Assembly: GCA_001643675.2 (NCBI GenBank)
Contig: LSRY02000030.1
Coordinates: 620,001-684,000 of the forward strand
Source: Monocercomonoides exilis PA203
Lineage: Eukaryota; Protista; Preaxostyla
Direction: 5' to 3'
DNA: 64,000 nucleotides
In this document: positions 2,244-54,299 of the stretch, piece by piece
How the letters are laid out: each line of letters starts with the position of its first letter
Numbering within the stretch: position 1 is the first letter of the stretch
Program-made: the position numbers and the translations under genes
The notes under the pieces: model-generated
Databases searched by the model: none
Seen by the model: only the letters and a program-made list of their open reading frames with translations
What the model was told of the DNA's origin: nothing

Positions 2244-2736
2244 CAGTGAGTGCTTTAGCCGATCCAAGTGCAAAACCCGATCCTTGCAAATATTTCTTTT
2301 TTCGTAAAAAATTATTTTAACTTTTCAAAGAAGCTATCTGGTGGTGAAATTACTTTTAACAAGTTCGCATTGGTTTTGGCAACAGATTTATTCTGTGAAG
2401 TTTCGGAATATTGGATTTTAAAACAATTTTCTAAGTTAAGAATATTTTCTGTTTTCATTGAGAAAGGATAAAATAAGAATTTTAAAAAAATTACCTGCGT
2501 GCTTAAAAATTGAAAAATTACTAATATTTTAACAATTTTTTATGATTTGAAATTGTCTGCAATTATTTTTCTCTTTTTCTTTGTTTGATCATGCCCATTA
2601 AGATGCGAAAAACAAATCCAAAGTTCTTCAGCATCTTTGAAAGATGTTTGCGACTATAACTTTGAATGTTTTTCGATGGAAATTAAGTTAAATAATTGTT
2701 GAACCTTTAAAATGCCCAGTTTTAATTTGTTTGTAT
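2244..2736 (+). repeat. Left TIR (493 bp)
   Basis: Reverse complement of 9372-9864. An identical shadow ORF (MQNPILANISFF...) appears at 2268(+) and 9840(-). Confidence 0.95.
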
Positions 2737-3899
2737 TTAAATTTCAATTTTTATTATTATTAGTTTAATTCTTTGTTTCTTATGTGTATTTATCTTTATA
2801 ATAATTAAACTTCGATACGCCACTGAATATAGAATTCATATTTAATATGCTCAATAAATCTGAATTATTTTTCGTTTTTATTATTGCATGTTTTTAAAAT
2901 TGAAAGATTTGTATTGTTTGGAATCCTTTCGATGATAATGACATTTTCATGTGAAATAGTGTTTTATTGTTTGTTAATAGATAATGTTTGCGAAGCCTAT
3001 ATTTCCATGAAAAAAAATATTTTCACCGTTTTTATTTTTCAAAAAATTTAACATTTCTTAGCAAATATGTATTTTTGTTTCATTTCAAACATAGATTATT
3101 GTTGCAAAAGCTGTTTTTTCTTTTATAAATTATATTATTGTGTTTCAAAAAATGTTATTTGCTTTGCTTAATGATTATTTTAATTAGCTCTTGTCAATTT
3201 CATTTTTCATACCAATTTTTCTTCTGAGGCAAATGTTGTTGACAATAACGTAACAATAATGAAAACAAATAATGCACAAATCTTTTCATCATTAAAGTAT
3301 TTGCTGAAGATGATAAAACTTTATTCAAAAAATGTTATTAGATCAATTTATTCATTGAGTTTCTTATGAAGAAAGATTTGTAATTTGGTGATTATTTTTT
3401 CACATCACAACATAACATTAATAATTATTAAGTTTTGCAAACTTGAAGAATAAATCTTTGATGTTTTTATCCTTGTCATTAATAAATAATGCCTTTGAAA
3501 TATTCAATTATCAATTTCGAATTTGATAATATGGGTGATTTTTTTTGTTATCATAAAAAAAGATCAAAAATTGAAAAAATAAATTCTAATGTGGTATTTA
3601 TTGATCAAAAATCAAATTGATTTATTGTAAGTATTTAGCTTTTATTTCTGTAATATATATTTGTTTTATGTATATATTCAAAAAAGCATACCTTTTTTCA
3701 TTAAAAAGAGTTTTTTGATCAAGTTTCAAAAAAAAAAAAAATGAAAAATCAATCTTTAAAAGGAAAATAAAAAGTTACAGTATTTGTATTGTTATACAAA
3801 TGCTGAAAGAACATTACAAATAAAGATTGGAGAATATTTCAATGAAGATTAGAAAATTAAAAATTTTAAAGGATGATAAACGTTTGTTTTCTCCAGTTC

Positions 3900-5000
3900 T
3901 TCAGCGAAAATTGTTTTGTCATATCTATCTTCCAGCTATGAGGCTCAACAGTTTCAGCAAAAGTTGAACGAAATTGATGAACATCAGATAACGCTAAGAA
4001 CAACAACTATCTCCACCTATTTGCTTCTATCTTTATTCTTCCTATTTAATTCACTTCTTGCTTCCTTCTCCATCTGCCACTCATATTCCTTCCATTTCCG
4101 CTCTTCCTCAACTTAATCCTCAATTCAAAAATACCACTAAAATTGAAAACTTCCCTCTCCAATGTTTTCTACCATTATTTCTCCACGTCAATCTGTTATT
4201 CAAAAACCTTTTATTGATATTGATTGCTCTTTCTTCTCTTCTCAATCCAATATCCAACTAAATTCTCTTCTTACTTCCATTATTCTTCCTTTAAAAAATT
4301 TTTGCAATATTCTCTCTGTCTCGTTTTCATTTTCCATTCATCTTTGATAGTTCCATCATCCTCAATAAGCACAATATTTTCTTCCTTTCTTCCCTTTCCA
4401 TTATCAACTGCACCAAAAACAGCATCATCATAACATAGCTGAACCAAAAAACTGCAACCAATGGTGGGCGCATCTCATTTGCCTCATCTGCCCCTGCCAA
4501 CACATTTTCTGTGAGTGACACCATCTTCTCCAGCTGTTGTGTGAGCGAGGATACAAGTTCTGGAGGAAGAGGCGGCGCTCTCATGATCGAGTACAAGGAT
4601 GATTCAGAAGTGTCATCCACAACCTTTTCCATCACCAATATCGTGTTTTCAGCCAACAAGGCCAGCGTCGGAAGAGATGTGTATTTTGTGTGCGAATCCC
4701 TTGTCGCTTCTGTGAAGGAACCCTTGTTCGCCTTCATGCTCAGCATCACAAAAAAATATAATCCAGTTGTTGGACATGTTTGAACAAATGCATTTGGCAA
4801 CTGGAATGTCGATTTGATAATATTTCTTGATGGGCAGACATCTGACAATAAATATGTGGATAATCATCTTGGCAACAAAGCAATGTATTGCTGGCTATCA
4901 AAAATACACTTCAAGAGCACACACAATGCGAAGGAGCTTCTGAAGAAGGCGCAGAACATAAGACAGAGATTTTTGAGTGAGTTGATTTGTCTGTGGATTT
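3900..5000 (+). pseudogene. Decayed surface-protein fragment (cargo)
   Basis: GGRGGALMI...ITNIVFSANKASVGRDVYFVCESLVASVKEPLFAFM motif, typical of this family (compare NKAQYGKDMFVEC). Homologous to 62200-63070 on the minus strand. Confidence 0.75.
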
Positions 5001-6499
5001 ATGTGTGTGAAAACCAAATGGAGGAATGGAGATTATATAAAGTTGAAGAAGAAGAGGTAGCAACAATTGGAGAAAGTGTGGAAGTTCAGATGAAGTTGAA
5101 TTGAAGCGAAACGATTAATCCTCTTCTTTTCAGTATAGAAAATCATTATTATTTCATTCACCACTCCTAAAATATCTTCTTTTCTATCTTTCTTATTAAA
5201 TTTCATACGGACAGCGCCATTCGTTGTCAAATGTTCAAACCCTTCTTTCCTCTCTTTAACTTTCTCTATTCATCATGAAACATTTTTTCACCAAAACATT
5301 TGTTCAATCACATTTGTAACAATTATCCAATCACACTTCTCCCTCTTCTCCTTCTACATAACAATCATATTTAACAAGAATAACTTTTTCTTCTTCTTCA
5401 ATTGCTCCTTCATTAACTTCATCTTCATTCATTTTATCTCCTTCATCTCCTTCCCCTTCTCCTTCTTCTTCCTCTTTTTATTCCTCCTCCTCCTCTTCTC
5501 CTTCTTCTCCTTCTTCTCCCTCTCTTTCTTTCAACACATAAGAAAATAGATCTTAATTCTCTTAACTATCTCAATTTGAACTTTCTAATTACTTTCTCAT
5601 TTCGCTCATACGCAGAATCTTCACTCTTCTGCGTCTTGTTGAAGCTTTGCGGAATTTTTGTTTCTTTTCTTTTGCTTCCTCCTACGCTAAGTGAGTTAAA
5701 ATATTCGTTGAATTCGATTCATCCAGTTATCTTCGCTTCTCTCTGCTCTTATTATGCTTATGTTCCATTGTTTTAGCATCCACTTCATCTCTCTTTTCCT
5801 TTTTCTCATTTCTCGTGAATATATCTTCTACATTTTACTCATCATTATCATCATTATTATTTCTTTAATCGTATCTTCTCCTTTCCTTCCTTCACTTCCT
5901 CTTTTTTCTTTTTAATCTCATCCTCCTATCAGATTGTTAAATTAGCTGCATTTTGTGTTGTGTTTCAGAAGAATGACTTCTCACACCTGAATATCACCAT
6001 CCGCGAACATTTTTGCAATACAGGGGTCATCTGCAGAAAGTTGTTGTGCTGCTGATGCAGAAATCGATAATTGATCTTGTGATGGGGTTGCTAAAGGAGA
6101 ACATCGAGATGAAGATATTTGGCTCATTGCTATGGTGAAAGTGCTGGACAACTAGGATGCAACGACCTGGGGCTTCAGCTGTGCTCGCTGGACTGGCTTG
6201 TGAGGAAAATGTGAATAGATTCGCTGTTCAGGCCAAGAGAAAGAGAGTCATTTTATATGTAAATTCCATGTAGTGTGCTATTAGTGATGGTCATTTCATT
6301 GTTGCATAATGTGTTGCTGAAGGAGCCTTGTTGAAGTTCGAAGTGCTTCTGCTTATTGAACATGCCTCAAGTGTCGCTGAAGAGCGAAAGTGGAAAACTG
6401 ATGAGCTTTCAAGAGTCAATGGAACCCCACTCTGGGCAATGGTTTCTTTGGCTGTTTCACTCGCTGCGCTGCTGTTTCACTATGATAGGTTACCACAGA

Positions 6500-8400
6500 G
6501 CTGATTCAGCGAGATTAAGGTGAAGAAAATGTGAATCATGCTTTAGAAACTTTCTGGTTGATTTGTGATAGAAGAAGCAGAAGAAGAAGGAAATATGTTC
6601 CGCAAGGGATCCGCCGAGGAGGCAGTAGAAGGAAGAGCGGGCAAATACGAAGGAAAAGCGGCAGCTGATGAGGATGCAGTTGTTGAAAAAAGCGACAACG
6701 GCAACGAGAAAGTTGTGGCGAAGTGAACAGGGACAAGATTTCCAGAGGTTCAATCTACTCGCACGTCAGCAAGAGAGATATGGGTGTCGAAGAAAAAGGA
6801 GGCGAAGATTCAGAAGGCGTTGTCGATGGTGCGGTAGAAATAGAGTACGACTGTGAAGAGTGAAGCGCAGGAGGCAAGCGGGGAGCATCACGGAAGGCAA
6901 AAGAGATGATGTCTTGGTCGACGAATATCTGTTGGGCGCGTAAGAAGGTGATGAAGGGGAGAAGTTCGATATCTGCATCGAAATCCAAATCAAAATCGGA
7001 ATGGGAGGAGTCGGAACTACAGTTTGATGTGTTTGTATCGAGGGAGGGCTGTGTGAAGTCGATGGAAAGGAGGGACTCGTTGATCTGGGCGGGGATGGAG
7101 GAGCACCGGAAATAATCATCCTTTCCCATAAAGGCAGCATTCAAGGCGAAATGGATGTTGAGGATGAAAAGAGAGGCAGAGGTGTTTGCATGCTTGGGAT
7201 CGTTGACAAACAGCCCACTAACTCTTTCTGTTGTTTGGGAGCAGTTGCCCAGGTGGAGGATGCATGCTCACATTAACAGCAGCAATTTCTTGCAAAATAG
7301 AATAAATGATCGATAACCAGAGAGCAGTCCAGTACCCATATGCGCTGAAGTCCAAGCCTGTTTCTCAGTCAACAAACACCTTGCTGGTCATGTTGGTCCA
7401 GAAATATACAACAAGCAGGAAGGAATCCTGAAGCAGGATTTCGCCGGTTCGAATCTGTTGAACTCGTCAAGGGAGCTCAGATTGGTGCTGGTTATGGTCC
7501 AGTTGAAATAATCGGTATCCACCACAACCGACAGAATGCTATCCGACACAAACACCTTTTTTCTTTTCCACTCATCACATCCGGCAAACACAACCACTTC
7601 AAGTGTAAACTGCTTGGTAGTATCTACTGCTCCAAAGAGCATCTCGCAACCCAGGCCAGAGCTTTGTTCCTGCCTCCATTTGTAGAAGCTGTTTCTTCTT
7701 TGAAGGACGAATCATAAATCAGTAAGACATTCTCTACCTCCAGCTCGGCTGCAACACCACCATCTCTGGTATTCGTTTGGTCCCTCATTTCCTACCCTGC
7801 CTCGCCTCTTCAAACCCCTGCCATATTCACCAGCCCGCCGTCTCAACTTCACGTCTGTAAATGATTAAAAATCATTTTGCTTCCCTTCACAATGCTGCAG
7901 TCTGTGCACTCTGTTGGTAAAAATATGATGCTAGCAACTTCGTCCAGTATTTTGAAGCCGCTCAGAATCGAACTTTATGATCCTAGTGTTATCAGCCAGA
8001 AGATCAACCTCTCCACATTTCCAAGTTGCAAGCTGCGACTTGCGTTGCACTATTAGCGTGGCTATTCTAACTTTTAGCTGTGCAAGTGGCACAATGAACC
8101 AAAAGCTGTCAAAATTTTGGATCAAATTTTTGTTCAGAAAATTATTAATCATCAGTTAATACAGTGTTGTCTGTGAATTTGGAAGATGGATAATTTTTTC
8201 AAAAAGGCAAGTGCAGAAAAGCAGTGGATGACGTTGTCAGTCAGACAATAAATGGGTGAACCTAAAAGGAGGAAGTGGTAGAAGTGTCGTTGAAGAAGAA
8301 GCTTGAGAAAGATGAAAGAGAAGAAGAATGGATGCCTGTGAGGAAATCATAAATATGCTAAGGAAGTTTAAGATTTATCTGAAACTGAACTTCTTGAACT
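6500..8400 (-). pseudogene. Decayed surface-protein fragment (cargo)
   Basis: FALNAAFMGKDDYFRCSSIPAQINESLLSIDF resembles FVMNEAHVGKDIFVRCHSIARQINETLFALNY of the 3056-aa gene. LYFWTNMTSKVFVD*ETGLDFSA resembles VYLWRNWSGDGFVSREKGGDFSG. Many stops and frameshifts. Confidence 0.7.
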
Positions 8401-9371
8401 GTGTTGCCTTTTCCTTTGCATTTTTAAAACAAAAATTTTCAATAACATTTTTTGATCAGTTTATTTGGAAATTCATTTTATTAAGTAAAACAAACACAAC
8501 TCATAGTTTTTTTGATAAATGTTATTCATAACAACACATTTATGTTTCATATGCTTTTGAAAAAATGTTGTTTTCAGCAAATTATATTAAAATTAACAAA
8601 CAAATTTCAAATTTTCTTTTCAGAAACGTCATAACACAAATTTTTCAAATATTAAGATTGATAACGTTTCAATGATAATTGTTATTATAATTTTTAAATA
8701 AGAAAACTTAAGTTTTGATGTGTTCATGGAAGTTTTGTATTTTTTTGCATAAATGTTATTATTTTTAAAAATATGAAACAAAAAGTTTAAAAAAACAAAT
8801 TAAAATCTTCAATTAATTGATAATAATAAAATATTAAACAATTTTCGAATAATTTAAATAAAAAAACTTTCATATCAACCCCACCCTTAATGAAATAATT
8901 TTTTGATCAATCGTCGGAATTTTTTATGATATCAAAAATAATCACCCATATTCGTATCAAATTTATTGAAATTATTCTCAACACAAAAACCAAGAATTAA
9001 TGTGTAACAACATTATTAGAGATAAAAAAGAGTTTTCTTGATAATAACTGTTATGTTGAGAAAATATAAAATTGATAAAAGAGATAATAATTTACAAATC
9101 AGAAAAATTTGAAATTTGTGAACTTAACAAGTGAATTTACAATTACACTTATATTGAAAACTTTAATAAAAATTATGATATAATGCACTTCACATTGCAT
9201 ATTTACAAAAAATAGTTTTTCAATAAAAACAAACTTCAGAAAAAAATTGACTCCATCACAATGCGTATGTTCAATGCTCTTATGAAAGAAAAAACAATAA
9301 GATGTCACTTATATAAAATTTAAACAATCACAAAAAATTAACAACATATTTTTAACAAAAACTCAACACAT

Positions 9372-9864
9372 ATACAAACAAATTAAAACTGGGCATTTTA
9401 AAGGTTCAACAATTATTTAACTTAATTTCCATCGAAAAACATTCAAAGTTATAGTCGCAAACATCTTTCAAAGATGCTGAAGAACTTTGGATTTGTTTTT
9501 CGCATCTTAATGGGCATGATCAAACAAAGAAAAAGAGAAAAATAATTGCAGACAATTTCAAATCATAAAAAATTGTTAAAATATTAGTAATTTTTCAATT
9601 TTTAAGCACGCAGGTAATTTTTTTAAAATTCTTATTTTATCCTTTCTCAATGAAAACAGAAAATATTCTTAACTTAGAAAATTGTTTTAAAATCCAATAT
9701 TCCGAAACTTCACAGAATAAATCTGTTGCCAAAACCAATGCGAACTTGTTAAAAGTAATTTCACCACCAGATAGCTTCTTTGAAAAGTTAAAATAATTTT
9801 TTACGAAAAAAGAAATATTTGCAAGGATCGGGTTTTGCACTTGGATCGGCTAAAGCACTCACTG
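9372..9864 (-). repeat. Right TIR (493 bp)
   Basis: Reverse complement of 2244-2736. Confidence 0.95.
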
Positions 9865-13070: not shown

Positions 13071-13832
13071 TAAAATTATTTTTGTATTTGCAAAAAATGA
13101 ATATCAAACATTGAGTAAATCCACAGTCTGGAAGCTTTTAACTTTTTGATTCAATAAAGATCATAAGCATAATAAAATAATTATTTCCAAAGATTTGGGG
13201 TGAATATTTCACAATTATGAAAAATTCAACGATATGTTTCAGAATTATTCCGCAATCTCATAATTATAATTCTGACTTCACTGTTTGAAAATAAAAATTG
13301 AAATATCAAATAGTTCAGAATAATCTTTGTAAGAACTGTGAAGAACAAAATTCATAAAGCAAAAAATATAATCCCATTTTGTCGCAATAATTAACAGTTA
13401 TAATTTTATTCTGTACAACATTATTTGGCAAATCATAACAATAGCGGATTGAAAAAGGTCCAGCATTTTCTATTGTTTTCAATAGAAAATTTTGAAATGA
13501 GAAAAGAAGGATGATTAAAAATGAGATTTGGTAAATGGATAAGATCTTAGGGTTATCATTTAACCCCAACCCATTTTTTTATTCTGACCAAAATTTTTGA
13601 AGTGAAAAATTTTGAAAAAATAAAAAAATCCAAAAGAAGAATCAATTCTTCGAATTATCTTTCTTTTTCCTGGTTTTCTTTGCATCTCTTCGTTTTCCTC
13701 TTCGTTTGGGTCATCAAAAATAACATCAGAGCGTCTTCTTTTGATTTTATGTTTGAATTCAACCATTTCATCTTTTTCGTTTTCTTTCTCTTGTTTCATG
13801 TCTTTTTCCTTCTCCTTTTCTTCATTTCTCCC

Positions 13833-15112
13833 TTAAAATCTTTCCCAATTGTCGAGAAGTTCTTTTTTTGTTATTAACTTTCCAAAATAATCGAAACGGA
13901 AACGATGGGAAGGATGAGGGTATTTTGAAGATTCCGGCAGTTTGCGAAGAACCGGACTGAAAGTATTATGAATGACTCCGCTTTCTTCTGAAGCTTTTTT
14001 GATGGCAGAAGGAGTGAAAGCGGAGTGAATAGCTTGAGGGAGCACGTCGACAAGTGCTTTTCTCGAAGCAGACGATGAAGTTGACGATGGAGCATCAAAT
14101 GATGAAGAAAGAGAAGTTTTGAGAGTTGCAAATACTCCTCTATCGAGTGGTTGAGACAAATGGGTGCTGTGGGGGATGAACGTTACGACATCTATGTTAT
14201 TTTCTGAGAAAGTTTTCCAAATTGAAGGATCACCGCGTGAAGGATGAGAGCCGATGAAAAGAAGATATTTCTCTATATCTGGTGACATGCGCTTTCTTCT
14301 TTCAACGATGGAAGGGAGAAGAACTGTTCCCGCATATTTCTTGAAGTTTTGCTTGTCCATCCAGCCACTTTTATTAGGCCAGATGTCCAGAGTTGGAGAG
14401 AGAAGAGGCTTCAGTTCGTCCGGTTGTTTAACGCTTGGCCAGAGAATGATGCATGGCAATGAATAACCATCTGCAGCCACGGCAGCAACAAGTGTTGCAT
14501 TGTCCATTCTCTGCGCTTCCTTGCAGAACCCAGCGCTTTGTCCAGTTGGATGGATCACTTCAATATTAGCACCAGATGGTACACGCAAAGATGATTCATC
14601 AACATTAAATATTAATGAAGGTGTGTGATGATTTTTTTCATGTAAATCTGTAATCATGTTATACCAAGGCTTCATTACACTCTTGCAGGAAACAGCCAGC
14701 CTATTTATGTCCAAACTTTTCGGTTTGCTCTTTGTCAACTCAGGATGCAGCTTCAAAAACCCGTACGCTGCAGCATTTGAAACTGAAATATGTGGCTCGT
14801 TTTCTTCTTTTGTATCGTTTGAAACATTTTCCATCTAGAGAAAAAATGTTATTTTTTCAATAAAAAACTTGAGCAAACCAATTCTCTAGTTTTCTTCATT
14901 GTTAAACTGCTCCCACAAATAGAATCAATTTTGATCACATCCAGAACTGTTTCTTCTTTCTCTTTGCTGATTGCCTGCGGTCTCCCTGGTTTTCCAATTT
15001 CAATTTTCGCTCTCAATGATCGAACTGCGTTTTTAATGCTGCTGCGGCTGAATTGCTTAGAATTAATGGCGTCTGTGATCCTGACGAAGCCATCATGCAC
15101 AATATGTGACAT
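13833..15112 (-). pseudogene. pogo-like transposase (HTH exon + 44-nt intron 14835-14878 + DDE_1 exon), probably inactive
   Basis: KPGRPQAIS motif, IFNVDES (D1), NKSGWMD, LLFIGSH (D2 replaced by G), HLSQPLDRGVF (D3). The GT..AG intron joins the exons in frame. An in-frame TAA at 13833-35 precedes a K/E-rich tail. Confidence 0.85.

Positions 15113-39840: not shown

Positions 39841-39841
<1 letters not shown>

Positions 39842-39892
<51 letters not shown>
39842..39892 (+). repeat. Poly-T tract (~50 nt)
   Basis: Homopolymer visible directly. Confidence 0.95.
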
Positions 39893-39894
<2 letters not shown>

Positions 39895-42289: not shown

Positions 42290-42360
42290 AATACGGGAGG
42301 AATCGAACCCGCATCCTTCTCGTCCTGTTCCAACACCCTAACCTGTTGTGCTATTTCTGG
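42290..42360 (-). other. tRNA-derived sequence / Pol III A+B box, not a canonical tRNA
   Basis: Minus strand has TAGCACAACAGGTTAG (A box/D-arm-like) and GGGTTCGATTCC (B box) at tRNA spacing. The acceptor and anticodon stems do not pair. Confidence 0.6.
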
Positions 42361-42472
42361 ACCCCAATGGGTTTAATTTTCACTTATTCTTTTATCTATA
42401 TCCCTAACCCTAAAAATATGGTCTATAAAAAAACTCACTTTTCTCATCAAAACCATAAAAAGAAGACTCGAG

Positions 42473-42941
42473 TAAACATGTGTGACTTTGTGACTATTGA
42501 CTGACAAAATTGGTTTCCTGACGGGCTGAGTAATAATGTTCACGTCAGAATATCAAAAATAAGAACAAACAATTGCATATGCAAATATTGATAAATATTT
42601 ATTCAAATAAGTAAAGAATGAAAATGCATTTCTCAAAAAAGAATATTGACAAAAAATCAAATTTGAAATGAATTGATCATCGAAATGTTAGTGAAGTCAG
42701 TGAAGTCAGTGACTGTTAATGGAGTCAGTATTCTGCAGGGAAGTGATATAAAATTTATTTATAAAAAAAAAGAAAAGTTCGAAAAATAGAACAAAATGAA
42801 TATATAAATATAATTTGATATATATTACGAAAAGTCCAAAAATCAGAGAAAATAATCTTATTTTTCAAATACCAATACTGACGTGGATTTTTTATAACTG
42901 AAGGACGAGTCAAAATTTTTTAAATCTGTAACACATGTTTA
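42473..42941. mobile_element. 469-bp hAT MITE
   Basis: TIRs TAAACATGTGTGAC and GTAACACATGTTTA. TSD GACTCGAG / GATTCGAG (7/8). TGAC-rich interior. Confidence 0.85.
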
Positions 42942-43165
42942 GATTCGAGACACAACCCTCTAACCTAAAACAACTTTTTGAAGAAGATTTTTATGATAAC
43001 CCTCACACTAAAACAAATACAAAAGTCAGAAAAAGAATTCATTCAAACCCTATAAATATTATTTTGGTTCGATGATCAAAAGGGTCCGCATATGTGCAAT
43101 CTTTCCAAACACCCACATCAGCTTAATCTGTCAGTGTATATTAATTTATATTTTTTTAAGCAATA

Positions 43166-45163
43166 GGGTTATCATTTAACCCCAACCCATTTTTTTATTC
43201 TGACCAAAATTTTTGAAGTGAAAAATTTTGAAAAAATAAAAAAATCCAAAAGAAGAATCAATTCTTCGAATTATCTTTCTTTTTCCTGGTTTTCTTTGCA
43301 TCTCTTCGTTTTCCTCTTCGTTTGGGTCATCAAAAATAACATCAGAGCGTCTTCTTTTGATTTTATGTTTGAATTCAACCATTTCATCTTTTTCGTTTTC
43401 TTTCTCTTGTTTCATGTCTTTTTCCTTCTCCTTTTCTTCATTTCTCCCTTAAAATCTTTCCCAATTGTCGAGAAGTTCTTTTTTTGTTATTAACTTTCCA
43501 AAATAATCGAAACGGAAACGATGGGAAGGATGAGGGTATTTTGAAGATTCCGGCAGTTTGCGAAGAACCGGACTGAAAGTATTATGAATGACTCCGCTTT
43601 CTTCTGAAGCTTTTTTGATGGCAGAAGGAGTGAAAGCGGAGTGAATAGCTTGAGGGAGCACGTCGACAAGTGCTTTTCTCGAAGCAGACGATGAAGTTGA
43701 CGATGGAGCATCAAATGATGAAGAAAGAGAAGTTTTGAGAGTTGCAAATACTCCTCTATCGAGTGGTTGAGACAAATGGGTGCTGTGGGGGATGAGTGTT
43801 ACGACATCTATGTTATTTTCTGAGAAAGTTTTCCAAATTGAAGGATCACCGCGTGAAGGATGAGAGCCGATGAAAAGAAGATATTTCTCTATATCTGGTG
43901 ACATGCGCTTTCTTCTTTCAACGATGGAAGGGAGAAGAACTGTTCCCGCATATTTCTTGAAGTTTTGCTTGTCCATCCAGCCACTTTTATTAGGCCAGAT
44001 GTCCAGAGTTGGAGAGAGAAGAGGCTTCAGTTCGTCCGGTTGTTTAACGCTTGGCCAGAGAATGATGCATGGCAATGAATAACCATCTGCAGCCACGGCA
44101 GCAACAAGTGTTGCATTGTCCATTCTCTGCGCTTCCTTGCAGAACCCAGCGCTTTGTCCAGTTGGATGGATCACTTCAATATTAGCACCAGATGGTACAC
44201 GCAAAGATGATTCATCAACATTAAATATTAATGAAGGTGTGTGATGATTTTTTTCATGTAAATCTGTAATCATGTTATACCAAGGCTTCATTACACTCTT
44301 GCAGGAAACAGCCAGCCTATTTATGTCCAAACTTTTCGGTTTGCTCTTTGTCAACTCAGGATGCAGCTTCAAAAACCCGTACGCTGCAGCATTTGAAACT
44401 GAAATATGTGGCTCGTTTTCTTCTTTTGTATCGTTTGAAACATTTTCCATCTAGAGAAAAAATGTTATTTTTTCAATAAAAAACTTGAGCAAACCAATTC
44501 TCTAGTTTTCTTCATTGTTAAACTGCTCCCACAAATAGAATCAATTTTGATCACATCCAGAACTGTTTCTTCTTTCTCTTTGCTGATTGCCTGCGGTCTC
44601 CCTGGTTTTCCAATTTCAATTTTCGCTCTCAATGATCGAACTGCGTTTTTAATGCTGCTGCGGCTGAATTGCTTAGAATTAATGGCGTCTGTGATCCTGA
44701 CGAAGCCATCATGCACAATATGTGACATTCGTTCCAGTTTATTCTTGTATTTTCTATATTGAAAAGAAAGGACAGTTTGGCATGTTTAAATTTTTTGAGT
44801 CCTTCTTTTCTTTTTTGTTCAAAAAGAATTCTCATTTTTTATTTTTGTGTTTTGATCTTATTTTCAATATTTCAAATAATTAGAAGTTTATTTAATAATT
44901 ATGAAAAATGTTTTGAATGAACAATGCAGCTTTTCACACCTTGAAACCAACCAATTTCTCTTTGAAGTTTGATGGAAGGTTTTAAACCCCCCCATCTCCC
45001 CCCCATGAGAAATAGGCTTCATTTCAAAATACAATTGAAATTCAATATAGATTCCTTTTAAACAAAAAATTGAGTTATTATTTCAAAATGTGGGATATGA
45101 AACTTTTGTAATAAAAAAAAAGGTCAGAGTTAAAAAAAAAAGGAGGGGGTTAAATAATAACCC
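43166..45163 (-). mobile_element. pogo/Tigger-like DNA transposon, copy 2
   Basis: GGGTTATCATTTAACCCC ... GGGGTTAAATAATAACCC with TA TSD. 43166-44980 is near-identical to 13550-15364. Confidence 0.92.
43449..44728 (-). pseudogene. pogo-like transposase copy 2 (intron 44451-44494)
   Basis: Same protein as copy 1 except F>L, with the same D2>G change and in-frame TAA. Confidence 0.85.
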
Positions 45164-45759
45164 TATTTAAGAAAAAATTTTCATCACAATGATCATTCGT
45201 TTTTTTTATCATTTTTGCGATCAAAAAAGAACACTTTTGTTAGATTCTTCTTTTCGTCACTGTGAGAAATGTTGATTGATTGGTTTTAATTTTAATTCTC
45301 ATTTCGCTATTGTGAACAAAAACATATTTGGAAAAACAATGATTCATTTTTTTAAGAAGAAACATAGAAATAATTATCAATACTTAGGAATAATCTCAAG
45401 AAAATATGAATGAACAAGTGCTTATTTTTTCCCTCATAAATCTTTAACAGAGAAAATCATTTGAGGATGTTTTTTATAGAACAGAAGATAATAAATAAGG
45501 CTCAGAAGATATCTCACTTTAATTTTTAACATTCATTTTTCAAAATAAAGTGAGATAAAAAAGGTTAAATTTTTCATTAAAAAAACATGTTGCAATTTTC
45601 CTGAAGTTTTTAAAAATGATGAAAAAAGAGAAAAATCATCATTCAAAAAACAAAATGAGAAGCATTTGTTCATGTATTCGCAAAATTGTCAGCTATAGCT
45701 AATGGTTAAACACGTAAGGATTTTAGTTAAGAAAATCAGTTATTTTATGAAATGTGGAG

Positions 45760-46800
45760 ATGCAATATTCGTATCCTTTTTCTTCCATCTTTTCAAACAT
45801 CTGGATAAATTTTTTTGAAAAGTTCCTTTTGTTTAATTTTCAAATGAAATGTCAATTTCATATTTTCATCAAAATTTTGTTCCCACTTATTAAAGTTCAC
45901 TAAAATGGAAATAAGAACATTGTCTTGATTTTATTTTTATGACAGCGAAATTTGGTGAGTGGGAACAGAAAATTGATTGAAATATGAAATTTTTATTTTA
46001 TTTGAAAATTAAACAAAAGGAACTTTTCAAAAAAATTTAGACATCTTCATTTTGGTTGCCTTTCTTTTCTATTCTTCCATTTCATCTTTCTCCTTTTCTT
46101 TCAATCGACTTGAAAACTCATCGAAAATTTTCAACAAAAAATGTCATTTCGTCATCCGATATCAGTTTCTGTGTCACCTCCAAAAAAACATCAATTGCTC
46201 CGCCTTTCAGAAAGTTATCAACTTTTATTGCTTTGTCATCTGCTGCATTTAGCGGATATATGCATTTCTCGCCATTTCTTCGTAATAATCCCTTGATGCT
46301 GATAATATCTGAGCAACGATGCTGATAAGTTTACCAAATTCTTCATTCCTTAATTGACAACAGCGAAAATAAAAAACAAATTGTTGTTGCCATCCCACTA
46401 AAACAAGCTTTTCTTACGTTTCATTCATTCATTCTTCTTTTTCTCCATTCCAATTTACGCTCTTTATCAACTCTTAAAATTCATCTCTTTCCTCTCTCAA
46501 AAAATGCAGCTCATTTGTATGAATTCCTTTTCAATTTCTATTATACTCAAATCTTTGAAAAAAGCTACCAACCAGACTAATTTTCAAGGAGGATGAGATT
46601 GTGATATCTCTGATGGTATTTTATGATTTCAGCAATCATCTTTAAAAATAGTTCTTATCAAACTATCTAATAAAAAAAAAGAAAGATATAAAATATTAAA
46701 AATTTTGAATTTTGAAATGAACACAAACAAATTATTTCATCATTAAAGTTTTCCTTCCACATCTTTGATAATGCATTTCAAACAGAAAACGCGTGATTTT
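45760..46800 (-). pseudogene. Degraded helical-family gene (NELHF...KRKATKMKMFEKMEEKG)
   Basis: The minus strand retains family motifs (aatgagctgcatttt; gatgtttgaaaagatggaag). Heavily decayed. Confidence 0.6.
45806..46039. mobile_element. Fold-back (hairpin) MITE-like insertion
   Basis: ~85-bp inverted arms (TAAATTTTTTTGAAAAGTTCCTTTTGTTTAATTTTCAAAT.. and its reverse complement). ACATCT is duplicated near both ends. Confidence 0.7.
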
Positions 46801-47107
46801 AATCATTCAAATGAAATCTTTCATGCTTTCGGGTTGAAGAAATTCATGAATTATTTTTACTCAAAATAATCACATGTGTATGAGCACTCAAACCATTTTT
46901 TTGGGGGGGTTTGATATAAATAACAAATTATTTTTATGTATGCTTAAAATTATTTATTTGTTGACGTTATTATGGTTCACATGATCTTATAAGTGTTTGC
47001 GAAAATAAAAATACATCAGTTTTAATTTGTTTATTTTGTTTAAGGCTTTTATTAACATATTCGCATTAAATAAAAATAAGAATTTAAAGACACGTTTTAA
47101 TAAGGTT

Positions 47108-47146
<39 letters not shown>

Positions 47147-47714
47147 TGACCGATAGAGTGAAAATGTTGCATGTCGTGTCGCACAGGTCTAATTTCAAAT
47201 GCAAACACAATGGAAATAAACCTGTCTGACGTGATGACCACTGACGTGAAATTTTTCAATTCTGACGGACTTGACCCAAACATTCACGTCAGCGAAATAT
47301 TTCTCGAATTTTCAGAAGCAGATTTTTTTTTGAAAAATGAATCATTGTCGATTATTATTTCATTATCTTTATTTTTCACTGAATAATTATTCTTTTTTGA
47401 AGCTTTTTTTTCTTGTTTAAAAAACAATAAATTATTAATTTTTATGGGTTACTGACGTGAAGGCAAAAAAGGAATATCAGATCGTCATTGACTGTCCTTG
47501 TCAGTCAGGTCACACTAACGTCTTCATGAGTTTGATTGAAAAAGAAAAGCAATACGGTTTAGCTGAAGAGTTAAAATCGTCATTAGTTAACCCTGAAATA
47601 GTTTGATATTTTTTGTAATTTGATAATTCAGATTCATTTTGCTTTTTATAACGAAATCCAAGTTCAATGCATTTGAAAAAAAAATAAAACAATTGGAAAA
47701 GGTTAATTGTCAAA

Positions 47715-50441
47715 TTGTCCAGTTTGAAATACACTGTGAAACACCATCAGGAAAAGGTTCACTTGTTTCTTTTCTTTTTTTTAATATTTCCCATTTTAAA
47801 TTTCAAAGTTTACAAACACCCCAAGAAATATAACGAATTCATATCAAAGTTGTCATTTGAAATTGTTGGAGGTGAGTTGTGGATATCTTATGTAATTGTG
47901 AACATTGATGGTTCTCCAAAAAAAGATTGTCATAAGTACTATATCTGCCCAAACAGCAAGGAAGGTTATGCTTGTGGAGTATCAGGGCGAAAAACTTATT
48001 CTTCAATTGTTAATCATAATTGCAGTTTACTAAATATTTCTTGTATTTCATCTTTCAAAAAGCAACTTGATTTTCAACCAAAGCCAAAAATTGTATCAGA
48101 GAAAAAGCTGGATGGATCCGTATCAAAAAGTCAATTACAAGAGTATTTTGCATCATTTGTGAGTCGGAGCAATATTTCTTTTTTATCATGTTCATCGAAG
48201 GAAGCAAACACTTTTTTTTCATCACTAATTAAAGCAGGTCAAGAAAATCCATCAAAATCTCCGCAATCCATTTTCCCCTCTTTAACTCGTTGTTCAGTGT
48301 CAGAAATCATGATGAAAGAACAAATCAGAAAAAAGGAAGAAAATATCAATAAAATCACCAATACAGGAATTTGTCTCATGATGGATGGAGCAAATGTTGC
48401 TGGCAATCAGTACACTGTTGTTACAGTTTCACAGTTGAACATCAATTCAATACCATTTTTCTGGGGTTTATATGAATCCTGCGGATCAACATCAGAATAC
48501 GAGAAATTGATTTATTCATTAGTATTGGAATTTCAAAAGCATGACGCTGTGGTGAGGAGCATTTGCACAGATGGGTGTGCGTCTCAAAAGAAAGCAATTG
48601 AACAATTATCAACAAAAAATTCCTTTCAATCAGTTGCAGTTGATTCAGTTTTATCAATAAATCCGGTATTTATATACTGTTGCAATCATCTGACGAATTT
48701 GGTGATTTATCATTCATTCAGCAAAGTTCAATTTTTACGTGATTTAAAAAGACAAATACTGGAATTCGCTCAGCAAGCAAATTTAAAGAAAACCAAACAT
48801 CTTTTCAAAAAAAGAATACCAACATTTATTTCCACGAGATGGCAAAGTCTGTATGAATTGTGCTCATTTATAAGAAAAAATCGAGAAGTAATCCTAAAAG
48901 AAAATCTACTGAATGATGGAACATTGTGTAATATCATGAAAGCGGAAGTGTTTCTTTTCCCTCTTCACCTTTTGCAATTAAAATTCGAAAGTGATAAAAC
49001 AAAACTATCTTTTGTTTTCCCTTTATTGCTTGAAGCATTTGGATATTTGTTTTTTTTGACTGAACATCCCTTATTTTCTGTTAATGAATGGCACAATGCG
49101 ATTGTCAACGTGATCGTGTATTTGTATAACTATTTTTTCACTGGTAATAGAGGCATCACAATACCGTTATCATTTGCATTTACTCCAATTGGTTTTCAAC
49201 TTTACAGAAGAGGAGAATTTACATCGCTTTATTTCAATTCACCAAAATGCTTTACTGAAAAATGCAATGACATTTCAAAGTCAAATGATTCATATACAAA
49301 ACATCACACTTTTTCATTTCTCTTTTCATCAACAACAGCTTGTCACTCGGAAGCTCAATCATTTCATGCTTCTTCTGAAAAAGATGACCAATTTTCTCAA
49401 TTCAATTCTTCAATGATCAAAACAAAGGTTTCATTGTTGGCAAATGACATCCAAGAAGGGGCAATGAAAAGATTGAATGAAAAACAATTTGATGGAGATG
49501 TCAACATTTTTTCACATTTTGGATCATCAATGGAAAATGATAATGATGAAGAAGAAAGCCACAAAACCTCAAATCACGATGAATTTTCTTCTATTCTTGA
49601 GCTGATAACGGAAATCGAAAAAGAAAATTATATCATTCAAAAAGACATAGCAGGCAATGAAGAAGGATCGGATTCGCTCAGTGAAGAAGATGAATATGGA
49701 TTATTTCTAGCGGAAGAAAATGATGAAGGCGATGAGTACGTTCCAAGGACATGTGAAATCTTATCATCTGAAACTCCATTATCTTCTTCATATTCATCTT
49801 GTTCAGCTTCAATATCTCTTTCCACACACCCATCAGCAACATCATCATTCAGTTCATTTGAAAGAAGTCATGCAATATCTTCAGAAAGGCAAGTTGAACA
49901 AACTCGTGTTCAACGAAACAAAAAAAATGAAAACAGTGAACGTTTTGATGATGAATGCTACAATTTTGAGTTCAACGATGAAAACGAATGCGATACAGAT
50001 GTTGAAGAATTATTTTCTACAGGAAAAATTCAGATTTGTTGTGATATGAACGTATTTAAAGAAAAGGAATTGTTGAAAAAGGTTGAAAATTCAATCAAAA
50101 AGGACTGGGGGCCACGCCTGTTTGATTCCTTTATGAAATATTCCAAAACAGCGTTGCAAATGCTGGATGAAAATGCTATTCAAAATTTGAACTTACTATT
50201 TCAAAGACAAATGCATTCCTGCCCTGAACAAGTCTTTGAAGAAGATCCCGAGGTTTATTACAAAGCCTTCGCTTCATATGGTGACATTCCAATCCTGTTT
50301 TCCGGATTATGCTTGACTTTAATAGATTCTCCTTGCAGCGAGGCCAGCTGTGAAAGAATTATCTCAAGGATGCGTTTCATATTGGGAGATAAAAGACATT
50401 CGATATGTGCAAAGACATTGGACGCACTGTTGAAAATGTAG
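47715..50441 (+). CDS. hAT-family transposase (true 5' end probably spliced; candidate intron 47757-47808)
   Basis: CLMMDG (D), ICTDG (D), YCCNHLTNL (CxxH), STRWQS, and PCSEASCERIISRMRFILGDKRHSI (catalytic E and hAT C-terminal dimerisation domain). No internal stops. Confidence 0.9.
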   Translation: MSSLKYTVKHHQEKVHLFLFFFLIFPILNFKVYKHPKKYNEFISKLSFEIVGGELWISYVIVNIDGSPKKDCHKYYICPNSKEGYACGVSGRKTYSSIVNHNCSLLNISCISSFKKQLDFQPKPKIVSEKKLDGSVSKSQLQEYFASFVSRSNISFLSCSSKEANTFFSSLIKAGQENPSKSPQSIFPSLTRCSVSEIMMKEQIRKKEENINKITNTGICLMMDGANVAGNQYTVVTVSQLNINSIPFFWGLYESCGSTSEYEKLIYSLVLEFQKHDAVVRSICTDGCASQKKAIEQLSTKNSFQSVAVDSVLSINPVFIYCCNHLTNLVIYHSFSKVQFLRDLKRQILEFAQQANLKKTKHLFKKRIPTFISTRWQSLYELCSFIRKNREVILKENLLNDGTLCNIMKAEVFLFPLHLLQLKFESDKTKLSFVFPLLLEAFGYLFFLTEHPLFSVNEWHNAIVNVIVYLYNYFFTGNRGITIPLSFAFTPIGFQLYRRGEFTSLYFNSPKCFTEKCNDISKSNDSYTKHHTFSFLFSSTTACHSEAQSFHASSEKDDQFSQFNSSMIKTKVSLLANDIQEGAMKRLNEKQFDGDVNIFSHFGSSMENDNDEEESHKTSNHDEFSSILELITEIEKENYIIQKDIAGNEEGSDSLSEEDEYGLFLAEENDEGDEYVPRTCEILSSETPLSSSYSSCSASISLSTHPSATSSFSSFERSHAISSERQVEQTRVQRNKKNENSERFDDECYNFEFNDENECDTDVEELFSTGKIQICCDMNVFKEKELLKKVENSIKKDWGPRLFDSFMKYSKTALQMLDENAIQNLNLLFQRQMHSCPEQVFEEDPEVYYKAFASYGDIPILFSGLCLTLIDSPCSEASCERIISRMRFILGDKRHSICAKTLDALLKM

Positions 50442-52165
50442 GTCTGTATTTCTTGTTTGCATACATCAACATTTCAAATAAATTTAAATGCATTTCATTT
50501 TATATCAAAACGAAGACGAATGAGGAATAATACGAGCTATTCATTTATTAATCTTTTGAAACACTGAAATGAACGAAGGAAATATTTTGAAAACTGTGGA
50601 ATGAATAATTTCATATCGTTTCGTTTCTTTTATCACATTCACATATTACAAATTTCAGGGTTTTTTCTTTACCTTTTTTTTAAATTCACCTATAAAGTTT
50701 TTCTCATTTCATACACTTTGGATAAAGTGTTTTCACAAAAAATGCACTATCAAAGGCAGATGATGCAAATAAGATGTACCAGCAGATGGTGGCAGTCTGA
50801 TTGTTCAGCTGTGGCGAGTCGATATTTGTCATAGAGCAGTTGGTGATGGAGAAAAATAAGGCAGGGAAGGTGGTGGAGGAGAGGATACAGTTGGCGGAGG
50901 TGGATGAAGAAGTTATGTAGGTGATGGCGGTTGTGCTGAGATTGATGGAAGGAGACTGATCGGAAAGGCGGAAAAGAATAAAGATCACAGTAATAAAACT
51001 TTTGTAGAATATATCTATTATCAGAAACTTAATAGAAAATAAAGATGAAAATGAAATAGAAGCAGAAAAAGACGGAGAAGAAGAAGAAGAAGGAGGAGGA
51101 GGAGGAGGAGGAGGAGAAGAAGAAGAGGAATATGAAGGTGATGATGATGATGATAATTGATCAAATAGAGATTCAGCTTCGTCTGTTGAGAGATAAAGCA
51201 TATCAGAAAAATCTTCATCCATTTCGCCTTCTTCCATATCTCCTTCTGCTGACATACTATTCGATGGGAAGAAGAAGATGGCGAAGAAGAAGGTGAAGAA
51301 GAAATGGAAGGAAACGAGGTTTAGGAAGAAGAAGGAATAAATGAAATATAAGTTGGAGAACAAAAATGAACATTGAGAAGAGGCGAAAGATTTTGCATGC
51401 CATTTAATGAAGAGAGTGAAGAAATGGAAGAGAGAGAAAAGGAAAAAGCAGAAGGAGATTAAGATCAAATAGCAATTGATTCTTCCTCCATCTTCTCATC
51501 TCCCTCATTCAGTATCTTCAATATCTTATTCCCAACCAATCTCTTAAAGAAACTTGGCGAGCCAGCTCTTTCTTCATATTCTGCAACATGCCCGCGCCGC
51601 TTCTTGCCTTTTGTTGTTCTGCTTTCTCCAGCTCCAGCCGTTGCATCTCCAGAACATCCTCGGCTGAGAAAGGCATTTCACCTTGAGTATCGTTTCAAAG
51701 AATGTTTTTATTAAGAAAGCAAAGAGATTCGTTGAATTGGCATGTTTATTACCAGAAATAACAAACAAAATTGAATGAAGAACGTTAAATTAAAACTTTT
51801 TTAGAAAACATTTTTTATCACAGGTTTATTAAAAATATTTAAAAAAAGAAATGCCAAAATGTTTGCTTATTAAATAATTGTTATGAACATTATCACGAAA
51901 GTTATTGAACAATGAGAATAAATAAGTCTGGAAATGAAGCAAACTTTGCAAACATCGATGCAGCATTGGTATATCTATAACTAAATAATGTTCAATTATT
52001 TGAACTTTTTGGACTCTCATCCGAATGGTTGAATAGAACTGTGGTCTGACAGAGGAAGTTGCCTTGTTCCTCCCTCTTAACGTCCTCTCTCTGTTTCGTT
52101 ACCAAACTTGTTATCTTTTGAGCAGTCCCAGAAAAATACGTGTGATGATTGGTTCTGTTTGCTCT

Positions 52166-53467
52166 TCAAGTCAGTTGCGCATGTAATAAAATTGCAACTT
52201 CAGTGAAGAGTGGCGTTGCGCGAGTGAGCTCCAGTGAGTTGGTTGTGGTTGTTACCATCTTTCTGTCAAGAAACAGAATGAAGTGTAATGGCTGAGAACA
52301 AAAAAGTGATGATGAGGAAAGTGATGATGTTGATTGTGATTGTAAATGTGAGTTTGATGGTTGAGGGATGCCACTGGAGGCGATGATGGTGGCAGTTGCA
52401 TCGTTGCCTGTAATCATTATATTTGGGGCACGGAATATGAGAGTCTTTAAGGGAGTGAAGGTTGAGGCGAGGAGCGTGAGGGAATTGTCTTGATCATCTG
52501 TCAAACATTCAAGAGCATACTCGATTGTGGCGCATGGCCTAAGATGTGTTACTCCGCAGACATCACCATCTGTTCCGTTGCTTGCAATGATTTTGTAAGT
52601 AGTAATGAGAGGAAGCCAGCCATTATATATTTCGCTATCAGCTGTTCCATAGATCCATACTCTGTTCGTTGGAGTGGTTGAGCCACATTGCTGGAAAGGA
52701 GATTGGGTGATTGCATTGCCATTGAAGAACAAATCATTCCCCCTGCCGTTTGTTGCAGTGTTGCCATCAAAGAAACAGAATGTGATGAATTTATTTCCTC
52801 TCATCCAGGAATAAGTGGCTGAACAGCAAAGCGCAGCTCCTCCCCATGAAGTTGAAGTTGATATCAATTTGTTATTTATAATCTGGCAATCATTAACAAA
52901 AAATTGATTTGGCTTATTTACAGGAGGATCATTGAATGTGAGAGAACCAGCAGAATCACCACCAGAATTTGAAATGCACTTGCATTTGGTGAATAAGAAT
53001 TTACCATTTGATGGAAAATCACCAATCCAGAAATACCAACCAGTTCCACACCAGCCAGATATTGAACAACTTTCCACTCTGTTATCTGAGAATGAATAAA
53101 CAGAATTTGATTGTGACCAGCCAACATGAGAAACTCCTCCATTAGCTGCAGAACAACTTGTGAAATTGGATTTAACAATGTTAACATTTAACAAATATAT
53201 GCAATAGAACGCTCCACCATGATTATCATTTGAATAATTGAAAAGCGAGCAAGAAGTGATTGTGATACTTGCATATGCGCAAGCAATTTTAAGAGTACCA
53301 CCTTGATCTCCTGTGCAATTTGAATCATTCCACTCGTACCTTTCAAAGAGATGATTGTTCCTATCAAAAGTGGCCAATCTTAGTGTTTTTCTTTGAGATT
53401 CTGTTCCAACATACACAGCAGGTGTATTAGAAGTAGATCGATAAAGAAAAAGAAGTTGGTTGCACAA
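52166..53467 (-). CDS. Beta-helix surface-protein-like cargo ORF (433 aa; 5' end frameshifted or truncated)
   Basis: GGTLKI, HGGAFYC, FTSCSAANGG, WGGAALC, GNTATNGRGNDLFF, and the GTDGDVCGVTHLRPCATIEYAL module. Lies inside the hAT TIRs. Confidence 0.75.
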   Translation of the reverse strand: MCNQLLFLYRSTSNTPAVYVGTESQRKTLRLATFDRNNHLFERYEWNDSNCTGDQGGTLKIACAYASITITSCSLFNYSNDNHGGAFYCIYLLNVNIVKSNFTSCSAANGGVSHVGWSQSNSVYSFSDNRVESCSISGWCGTGWYFWIGDFPSNGKFLFTKCKCISNSGGDSAGSLTFNDPPVNKPNQFFVNDCQIINNKLISTSTSWGGAALCCSATYSWMRGNKFITFCFFDGNTATNGRGNDLFFNGNAITQSPFQQCGSTTPTNRVWIYGTADSEIYNGWLPLITTYKIIASNGTDGDVCGVTHLRPCATIEYALECLTDDQDNSLTLLASTFTPLKTLIFRAPNIMITGNDATATIIASSGIPQPSNSHLQSQSTSSLSSSSLFCSQPLHFILFLDRKMVTTTTNSLELTRATPLFTEVAILLHAQLT

Positions 53468-53947
53468 ACGAGCAGAAAGAAAGAATGAAGTGGTGTAGAG
53501 GGAGAAATAGATACGGAGTAGAAGATGAAAAATACATTGAAAAAGATTATCTTAAAGAAAATACAAAGAATAATTAAATTGAAGAAGCACTTAGCGTTAA
53601 CAAAAAACCGTCTGCATTACAGAAATATATGAATGAATTATATCGTTGAAATATTTTATTAAATCGATTGAAAAATGAAAAATGAAAGGAATTTCAAAGG
53701 TTTCAAACTGTTGAAGAAATAAATAGCATATATATGTCTGATAAAAAAATAATGTGAAAGAACAAAATACACATTGTTGCACAATCAATGCAAAACGAAT
53801 CTTAATAAAGAACAATTCATTCGAAAATTCAAACTGAAATAAATTTATGGGATATGAGAAAAAATCAATTTTTGATAAACTCAAAAATGAAAAAAACAAA
53901 TAAAGTTCAAAAAATAAAAACTCACATAAAAATAATAATTCACTCTT

Positions 53948-53948
<1 letters not shown>

Positions 53949-53995
<47 letters not shown>
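53949..53995 (+). repeat. Poly-A tract near the hAT right end
   Basis: Homopolymer visible directly. Confidence 0.9.
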
Positions 53996-53996
<1 letters not shown>

Positions 53997-54299
53997 ACTG
54001 GAAAACTACTGACGGACGTGAAAAATTTTTTTCAACACGTCATACAGGTTTAAATGGAAATAATGAAATTGCAATGAAATTTTCAATCAGATAAATATGA
54101 TTATTCAAAAATTGTTAAAAGGAAAACTGTTGTTAAAATCATCAATAATAATAAAATGATATTATTTTCATCTGTTATCAAATAAACTATTTTTGGTTGT
54201 TGTTTTCGGTTCTATCAAATGTTTTTTCTTTGCGATTCTTAAAGATAAAATTTGATCATAAATATTATTGAAAAATACGAAAAGAAAACGCAAAGTTAA

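Follow-up and report, generated by a model that had tools for sequence, protein, structure and literature searches.

The window analysed here, a 64,000-nt stretch of the genome of the gut protist Monocercomonoides exilis PA203 (contig C26, positions 620001-684000), contains a nest of at least 12 DNA-transposon insertions at positions 2244-54052, in which five elements (E1 to E5) and a further element nested in the first of them (N1) are bounded by terminal inverted repeats (TIRs) and target-site duplications (TSDs). Our preferred reading, to which we assign a probability of roughly 0.78, is that N1, E2, E3, E4 and E5 are transposons of the Pack type, which scatter fragments of giant beta-helix receptor genes and of a two-exon helical gene family and exchange sequence with such genes, and which do not explain the expansion of the intact genes. 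The assembly searched comprises 82,301,135 bp in 101 contigs; C-numbers designate contigs and L-numbers loci that were read at base level, and several other copies are known by coordinates only.

Terminal repeats and recurring cargoes

All ends of the five elements were read directly in the window. The initial annotation, made from the sequence alone, had proposed these five TIR-bounded elements, with exact TSDs in three and imperfect ones in those starting at 27957 and 32820, and on both counts it was right: E1 is flanked by TA, E4 and E5 by exact 8-bp duplications, E2 by 8-mers that agree at 6/8 positions, and E3 by a 7/8 match with a 2-bp offset. Its count of three superfamilies was too low. 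At least four TIR families are present, namely pogo/Tc1-mariner (TA TSD), hAT (8-bp TSD, TIR TARNCCTG...), a GG-ended, Merlin-like family with an 8-bp TSD, and an unclassified, highly abundant GGGTGATT-ended family with a 4-bp TSD. The cargoes that had been named for E2 to E5 were recovered, with helical-family sequence in E2 and E4 (homology confirmed), a surface-gene piece of ~3.4 kb in E3, and a beta-helix open reading frame (ORF) in E5, an autonomous-looking hAT element. The surface fragments that E1 was said to have captured had to be reassigned, as they belong to the nested N1, and the combination of E1 with N1 is unique in the genome.

Matches to the terminal motifs were counted genome-wide against a control, giving 234 versus 49 for E5-type, 120 versus 0 for E3-type and 2024 versus 0 for N1-type ends, and a chance origin of the TIR termini is excluded at genome scale. 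TIRs together with cargo were found in ~25 copies for E3, at least seven for E5-type elements, at least eight for E2, at least five for N1 and two to three for E4. The G+C content of the cargoes is 42-46%, against a background of 26-34%. Fragmentary copies of the two gene families in the window lie mostly within TIR elements, the exceptions being 22-267 and 1227-2165, and the intact copies all lie outside the five elements.

The features that define Pack-type transposons are unevenly distributed in the nest. TIRs with a TSD are present in all five elements and in N1; an interior derived from a host gene that exists outside the element is found in E2, E3, E4 and E5 and is lacking in E1 itself; and a transposase of their own is missing from N1, E2, E3 and E4, whereas E5 has one (908-aa ORF). 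The initial annotation's reading of the nest as a Pack-TIR system stands for N1, E2, E3, E4 and E5, where TIRs and cargo recur together elsewhere, and falls for E1. It had suggested looking for the same unit at several loci with different TSDs, and such units were found at base level for N1, E2 and E3 and by coordinates for E4 and E5. The opposite outcome that it had named, with each combination of TIRs and cargo unique in the genome, was encountered in E1 with N1 only and does not apply to four of the five elements. Bracketing by chance or simple nesting, in which transposons inserted beside or into genes or one another and nothing was captured, describes E1 correctly, its gene pieces having arrived with N1, and also accounts for much of E4, which consists of nested transposons. 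As a general explanation it is extremely improbable, as units of the N1, E2, E3, E4 and E5 types are found elsewhere with unchanged internal junctions, while their flanks and TSDs differ wherever these can be read, which refutes it for the same four elements.

E3 and the giant receptor genes

E3 (32820..38141, minus strand) is a GG-ended, Merlin-like, non-autonomous element with an 8-bp TSD and TIRs of 131-157 nt that are 92-93% identical. Its cargo of ~3.5 kb occupies 33387-36851 and 37306-37579, with the coding sense on the minus strand, and is interrupted by a nested TA-type miniature inverted-repeat transposable element (MITE) at 36852-37304. The ~25 loci that combine E3-type TIRs with this cargo belong to a set of ~60 elements with E3-type termini in all. 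Nine copies read at base level all have different flanks and all start with GGCA or a one-base variant; an exact 8-bp TSD was found in three of them (L042, L044, L045) and a near-exact one in two. E3 contains no long ORF and has no transposase homology. Loci with the cargo sequence only are 91.5-93% identical to the cargo of E3, and four of the six that were fetched (L046, L047, L048, L051) are open over the entire 7.0-7.7 kb retrieved and 91-96% identical to one another. The E3 cargo corresponds to amino acids 689-1922 of one such parent frame in a single continuous reading-frame alignment with five in-frame stops, and reads as an internal ectodomain piece of a giant receptor gene, the classical Pack signature.

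E3 probably belongs to the Merlin superfamily, for which a terminal 5'-GG and TSDs of 8-9 bp are the structural marks and of which at least seven families with more than 100 copies have been described in Monocercomonoides (Lopes et al. 2021, PMC8101967). Terminal 5'-GG and an 8-bp TSD are shared by E3 and these elements, but the TIRs of E3 are ~130-157 nt long, compared with the 23-29 nt described, and E3 lacks a transposase and carries 3.5 kb of a receptor gene (PMC8101967). The genome contains 575 candidate Merlin transposase loci. One open Merlin DDE frame (C12:1565095-1565487) is located, by coordinates only, between E3-type TIRs at C12:1560860 and 1569016. When the best 150 of the 575 loci were compared with E3-type TIR pairs, one fell inside a pair and two lay close by, numbers too small to call. 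A further pair of E3-type TIRs of the same GG-ended family, 2884 bp apart, lies 5.7 kb before the window (C26:611370-614253).

The cargo and the backbone of E3 differ markedly in conservation. Among the transposon copies the backbone is 62-85% identical, whereas the central cargo is 90-95% identical, both among the copies and to intact genes; towards either edge, over the outermost 150-250 nt of the cargo, identity to the genes is no more than 60-75% (55-57% at the amino-acid level). All copies share the same junctions, which argues for one old capture. Synonymous divergence (dS) between E3-borne cargoes is 0.17-0.18, below the divergence of the backbone, and the ratio of non-synonymous to synonymous divergence (dN/dS) is 0.35-0.41 from transposon to transposon and 0.20-0.37 from gene to gene, where a value of ~1 is expected for dead DNA. 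The E3-borne cargoes contain only 2-5 in-frame stops. In most 300-nt intervals each cargo is closest to a gene and furthest from the other transposon copies. The simplest reading of these figures is that, after capture, gene conversion, with functional receptor paralogues as donors, repeatedly rewrote the centre of the cargo, in which case the cargo edges and the backbone would have kept their old divergence. A well-kept cargo on a decayed backbone is a new observation here. E2 and N1 show no contrast of this kind, and in E5 it is reversed, the copy on C68 being 92-93% identical in the transposase half and 81% in the cargo half.

A more far-reaching proposal would be that the hundreds of transposon-borne receptor fragments constitute a mobile pseudogene archive, with gene conversion running both ways between them and ~300 giant receptor genes. 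We regard this as unlikely; if true, it would amount to a transposon-fed diversification of the surface repertoire, with a logic like that of the archives in antigenic variation.

hAT-type elements, N1 and their surroundings

E5 (47217..54052, plus strand) has an exact 8-bp TSD, AATGGAAA, and TIRs whose starts match at 9/10 positions. It carries a transposase ORF of 908 aa (47715-50441, plus strand) and, convergent to it, a cargo ORF of 433 aa (52166-53467, minus strand) that corresponds to the beta-helix region at the N-terminus of giant receptor-family members. The 908-aa ORF can be aligned with the Hermes transposase (E 6e-4) in two blocks, comprising the CxxH/RW region and the C-terminal dimerisation motif, and the nearest clusters among its Atlas feature matches are hAT and Dimer_Tnp_hAT at 0.94-0.95. 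A search for homologous proteins with this transposase returned no match at E 1e-10 or better. The 8-bp TSDs, the short TIRs and the alignment with Hermes are in keeping with the hAT superfamily (Hermes, Ac, hobo), from which E5 differs in a transposase too diverged for the Pfam hAT models and in the additional, convergent ORF of host origin.

The 433-aa ORF shares 59-68% amino-acid identity with the first ~390 residues of a family that numbers 1374 candidate loci, and among the best 96 matches elsewhere to this domain, 45 lie in open frames of ~2000-3100 aa. Because it matches the N-termini of such frames, the cargo is a truncated 5' part of a giant receptor gene; a Pfam scan of it gave nothing usable. 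The cargo was also considered as a separate nested element, but an internal hAT TIR was looked for and not found. Most cargoes in the nest are dead fragments, and that of E5 is open but truncated. A second full copy of E5 is located at C68:146086-153289, and at least five elements of 3.9-4.0 kb share its right end and cargo (all by coordinates only). Both TIRs are listed for those at C63:26394-30340 and C5:686641-690569, and one TIR each for those on C76, C23, C91 and C1. These elements are too short to hold the transposase and are the expected deletion derivatives, in which the transposase was lost and the cargo kept.

E2 (27957..30540, minus strand) is a 2.6-kb non-autonomous hAT-type element with a 17-nt hAT-type TIR, nested in a MITE (~27724-31185). 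Its TSD reads GTTAAGTT on one side and GTTTTGTT on the other, and two other copies of the host MITE (L036, L037) are uninterrupted at this point and have a single intermediate 8-mer, GTTTAGTT or similar, which provides a paralogous empty site. The cargo (~28828-29833) is a dead copy of the two-exon helical (ARM-like) family, with stops and a retained intron-sized gap of ~155 bp. Four copies of E2 (L032-L035 on C40, C43, C80 and C30) are 84-88% identical over the whole element, the exact 8-bp TSDs CTAAAAAT and CTCGAATC were read among them (L033 and L034 have exact TSDs), and further E2-type TIR pairs of 2.86-2.91 kb are found on C1, C2 and C9.

E4 (41300..47191, no strand assigned), also non-autonomous and of hAT type, has the exact 8-bp TSD ATTTCAAA and carries a diverged helical-family fragment (45738-46557, minus strand) with 34-38% amino-acid homology. 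About half of E4 consists of three nested transposons, which are a 469-bp hAT MITE (42473-42941), a 2.0-kb pogo element (copy 2, 43166-45163) and a 234-bp foldback element (45806-46039), leaving a backbone of ~3.2 kb. This backbone and its cargo recur, without the nested elements, on C57 (81-89% identical) and partly on C42 (coordinates only). The short TIRs of E4 and E5 are related (TAGACCTGT and TAAACCTGT), and neither E2 nor E4 contains long ORFs or shows transposase homology. Two independent hAT insertions are not expected to share a TSD. The match to E4 at C57:203379-206179 spans the 8-bp TSD of E4 on both sides (41292-41299 and 47192-47199) and then ends.

An apparently intact two-exon member of the helical family at 57181..58467 (minus strand; two ORFs ~160 bp apart) was the copy against which the E2 and E4 cargoes were compared, and no hAT-type TIR was found near it. 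The family comprises 1769 candidate loci, the best 150 of which all have E <1e-44, are mostly free of stops and are ~45-50% identical in amino acids. Its features weakly resemble those of alpha-solenoid (ARM/HEAT/TPR) proteins, and a Pfam scan of the helical ORFs gave nothing usable. E2- and E4-type transposon-borne copies number only ~8-10. Conceivably, the putative host families are themselves passenger genes of transposons, the helical family and the short beta-helix genes owing their numbers to residence in mobile elements, for instance giant GGGTGATT-ended ones, and the elements described here are ordinary family members that captured nothing. In favour of this, of four helical copies in the window, hAT elements contain two and a tentative element, N2 (see below), a third; the GGGTGATT-ended family has 2024 termini, some of them in same-contig pairs 6-20 kb apart; and many short beta-helix genes on C25 occur in inverted pairs. 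However, none of the best 150 helical loci coincides with a listed hAT TIR pair, and their open frames and level of identity are as expected of an old host family. The copy in E2 is a pseudogene, and the parent receptor genes are open beyond 7.7 kb and have no internal inverted repeats. We consider this alternative very improbable, and retain the reading of the helical and receptor sequences as captured host genes.

N1 (3533..8947, plus strand) is a 5.4-kb element without a transposase, nested in E1, with TIRs of ~30 nt starting GGGTGATT and the TSD ATAT (3529-3532 and 8948-8951). It carries two short receptor-like fragments in opposite orientations, 4403-4852 on the plus and 6920-7672 on the minus strand. 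When the interior of E1 was searched against the genome, only 3529-8951 recurred and the remainder was unique. The full-length copies of N1 that were found, on C60 (93% identical), C7 (90%) and, more distant, C47, C11 and C40, each have their own distinct flanks, with 4-bp TSDs of ATAT (three times), ATCT and ACAT, and all keep both receptor-like fragments. N1 has no ORF longer than 250 aa and no transposase homology, and a Pfam scan of its ORFs gave nothing usable. An assignment to piggyBac was considered and does not fit, the TSDs being ATAT, ATCT and ACAT instead of TTAA and the ends reading GGG...CCC. The members of the GGGTGATT-ended family range in size from MITEs of ~255 bp to the widely spaced pairs mentioned above, and N1-type termini or elements occur in the window at 3533, 8947, 15433-15687, 38276-38534, 39400 and 63424.

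N2 (39400..63424, minus strand) was delineated tentatively, from colinear similarity and candidate termini, as an old giant element resembling N1 that later received the insertions of E4 and E5. The stretch 54285-63422 matches N1 colinearly in inverted orientation with 66-76% identity, and candidate termini of N1 type lie at 39400 (plus) and 63411-63424 (minus) with differing 4-bp flanks, ATAT and TGAT. After in-silico removal of E4 and E5, a search for the right end found 39400 as the only candidate terminus, with unmatched 4-bp flanks, and N2 remains a tentative element that is not established. Repeats with periods of 9 and 12 nt occupy ~1.9 kb at 59900-61800, where the strand skew is extreme (GC skew -0.70), and shorter versions are present at 5384-5530, 51026-51153 and 56240-56460; they are probably low-complexity coding parts of receptor-like genes. 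On C25, positions 1.48-2.49 Mb (coordinates only) contain dozens of beta-helix genes of ~700-780 aa in inverted pairs a few kb apart, which adjoin the segment carried by N1, and this region may be a large palindrome-rich or transposon-rich one.

E1 (2244..9864, no strand assigned) has arms of 493 nt (2244-2736 and 9372-9864) that are 100% complementary and flanked by TA on both sides, and without N1 it is 2.2 kb long. Elements related to E1 agree with it in the terminal 40-400 nt and in the TA flanks (TA in E1, L027, L029 and L030), and two of them, L027 and L031, encode a DDE_1 transposase (E 3e-16 and 6e-8). Because relatives with the same termini and TA flanks encode DDE_1, E1 can be classified as a non-autonomous, long-TIR pogo-type element (Tc1/mariner superfamily); a TA TSD and DDE_1 in same-ended elements are found both for the E1 family and for the nested pogo elements. 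E1 captured nothing and was struck by a cargo-bearing transposon, N1. The long arms of E1 and L027-L030 are 98.4-100% identical within each element over 360-500 nt and 67-74% between elements, and seem to be homogenised within each element. Arms of 360-500 nt, near-identical within and diverged between elements, are also characteristic of Galileo/Foldback-type transposons, from which the E1 family differs in being related to pogo (TA TSD, DDE_1 in relatives) and not to P-element/Foldback.

A pogo element at 13550..15808 (copy 1, minus strand, TA TSD) has a 333-aa DDE_1 ORF (13833-14834; Pfam DDE_1, E 4.5e-11) and contains the N1-type MITE at 15433-15687. Over 1.87 kb it shares 99% identity with copy 2 (in E4), from which this 255-bp MITE is missing, the empty site being a single ATAT. 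As the MITE is present in one of two pogo copies that are 99% identical and its empty site in the other, the N1-type transposition machinery was active after the pogo duplication. Just outside the nest, 1227-2165 holds a 311-aa ORF that is 47% identical to amino acids 480-793 of the neighbouring giant receptor and ends 43 nt before E1. No continuation of it was found beyond E1, and it looks like an isolated receptor fragment and not like a gene split by E1.

Proposed capture and exchange, and the intact genes

The only intact giant receptor gene in the window (17790..26960, plus strand) encodes a beta-helix protein of 3056 aa with a transmembrane segment and a C-terminal kinase-like domain. 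The domain matches the Pfam family PK_Tyr_Ser-Thr (E 3.6e-8) in the C-lobe only (positions 161-257 of 258); the translation shows neither an HRD nor a DFG motif, and the protein is probably a pseudokinase. The gene lies in no TIR pair, and its flanks contain no significant inverted repeat or TIR. Intact receptor genes are numerous, 8-9 kb in length and 2-3 times longer than any cargo.

These genes bear directly on the strongest claim of the initial annotation, that capture and transposition are a main engine expanding and shuffling the functional receptor and surface-protein repertoire. Several observations fit such a role. Pieces of one receptor family are found in several unrelated TIR families, the ~25 E3-borne fragments are more numerous than the ~9 gene-like loci of that subfamily in the same search, and sequence exchange between cargo and genes is indicated. 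In the published assembly, 46% of which is repeats, 35% is 'unclassified' repeat, and many unclassified repeats overlap protein tyrosine kinases (PMC8767320), the largest annotated gene family with 332 members (PMC6759080). Nevertheless, the cargoes are at most 3.5 kb long, internal or N-terminal, and mostly interrupted by stops, whereas the intact genes, where checked, are not TIR-bounded; the receptor in the window has no TIRs, and 45 of the 96 best matches to the E5 cargo are in frames of ~2000-3100 aa. The helical family, with 1769 candidate loci, likewise dwarfs its ~10 E2- and E4-type copies. The main-engine claim is thus not borne out, and as an explanation of the functional repertoire we hold it to be quite improbable. 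The accompanying idea of shuffling is supported only indirectly, exchange between cargo and genes being suggested by the E3 data, and the only direction of flow indicated is from gene to transposon.

The preferred reading, of Pack-type carriers that scatter fragments, suggests the following course of events. Once per family (N1, E2, E3, E4, E5), DNA of a host multigene family would have replaced or joined the interior of the element, the sources being the giant beta-helix receptor-(pseudo)kinases and the two-exon helical family. Capture most likely proceeded by template switching during double-strand-break or gap repair, which we infer because an intron was retained, the gene fragments are internal and all copies have their junctions in common. 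The chimeric element would then have been copied to new sites by transposases acting in trans or, for E5, in cis.

Several points weigh against this reading or parts of it. No capture event was caught in the act, cargo-free ancestors falling outside the base-level comparison, and the copies on C68, C57, C63, C5, C76 and others are located by coordinates only. The placement of E3 in Merlin draws on the GG ends, the TSD and a single overlap of coordinates. For the E5 transposase, Pfam gives no match at E <=0.01 and no hAT family even at E <=10. With respect to gene conversion, no long near-identical tracts were seen in E3, the longest identical runs being at most ~2 times the expectation. Part of the contrast could have arisen if substitutions accumulate more slowly in the cargo, which is richer in GC, than in the AT-rich backbone, whose DNA may evolve faster or align less well.

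Pack-MULEs in plants and Pack-TIRs in animals are known carriers of gene fragments; in animals they are rare and dominated by hAT and Tc1-mariner elements, 1.4% are multicopy, and none has been assigned to Merlin (Tan et al. 2021, PMC8277862). The elements of M. exilis resemble them in being TIR- and TSD-bounded transposons with host-gene fragments inside, in DNA-level capture, in the preference for GC-richer sequence, and in the amplification by transposition of fragments that are mostly non-functional (PMC8277862). Unlike in animals (PMC8277862), every cargo family examined here is multicopy. Further differences from the known systems are that the same receptor family recurs as cargo in at least four TIR families, that one carrier, E5, keeps its transposase, and that one cargo shows signs of ongoing homogenisation with its parent genes. 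In the literature, no description of gene capture in Monocercomonoides was found.

The findings offer a concrete explanation for a published puzzle, namely that ~35% of the assembly of an amitochondriate model eukaryote is 'unclassified repeat', much of which overlaps tyrosine-kinase-like receptors. They extend multicopy gene capture by DNA transposons to the metamonads and to carriers beyond MULE, hAT and Tc1-mariner elements. The contrast between a kept cargo and a decayed backbone suggests that captured fragments remain in genetic contact with the gene family, a contact that bears on how receptor genes are annotated and counted, and whether transposons feed receptor diversity becomes a testable question.

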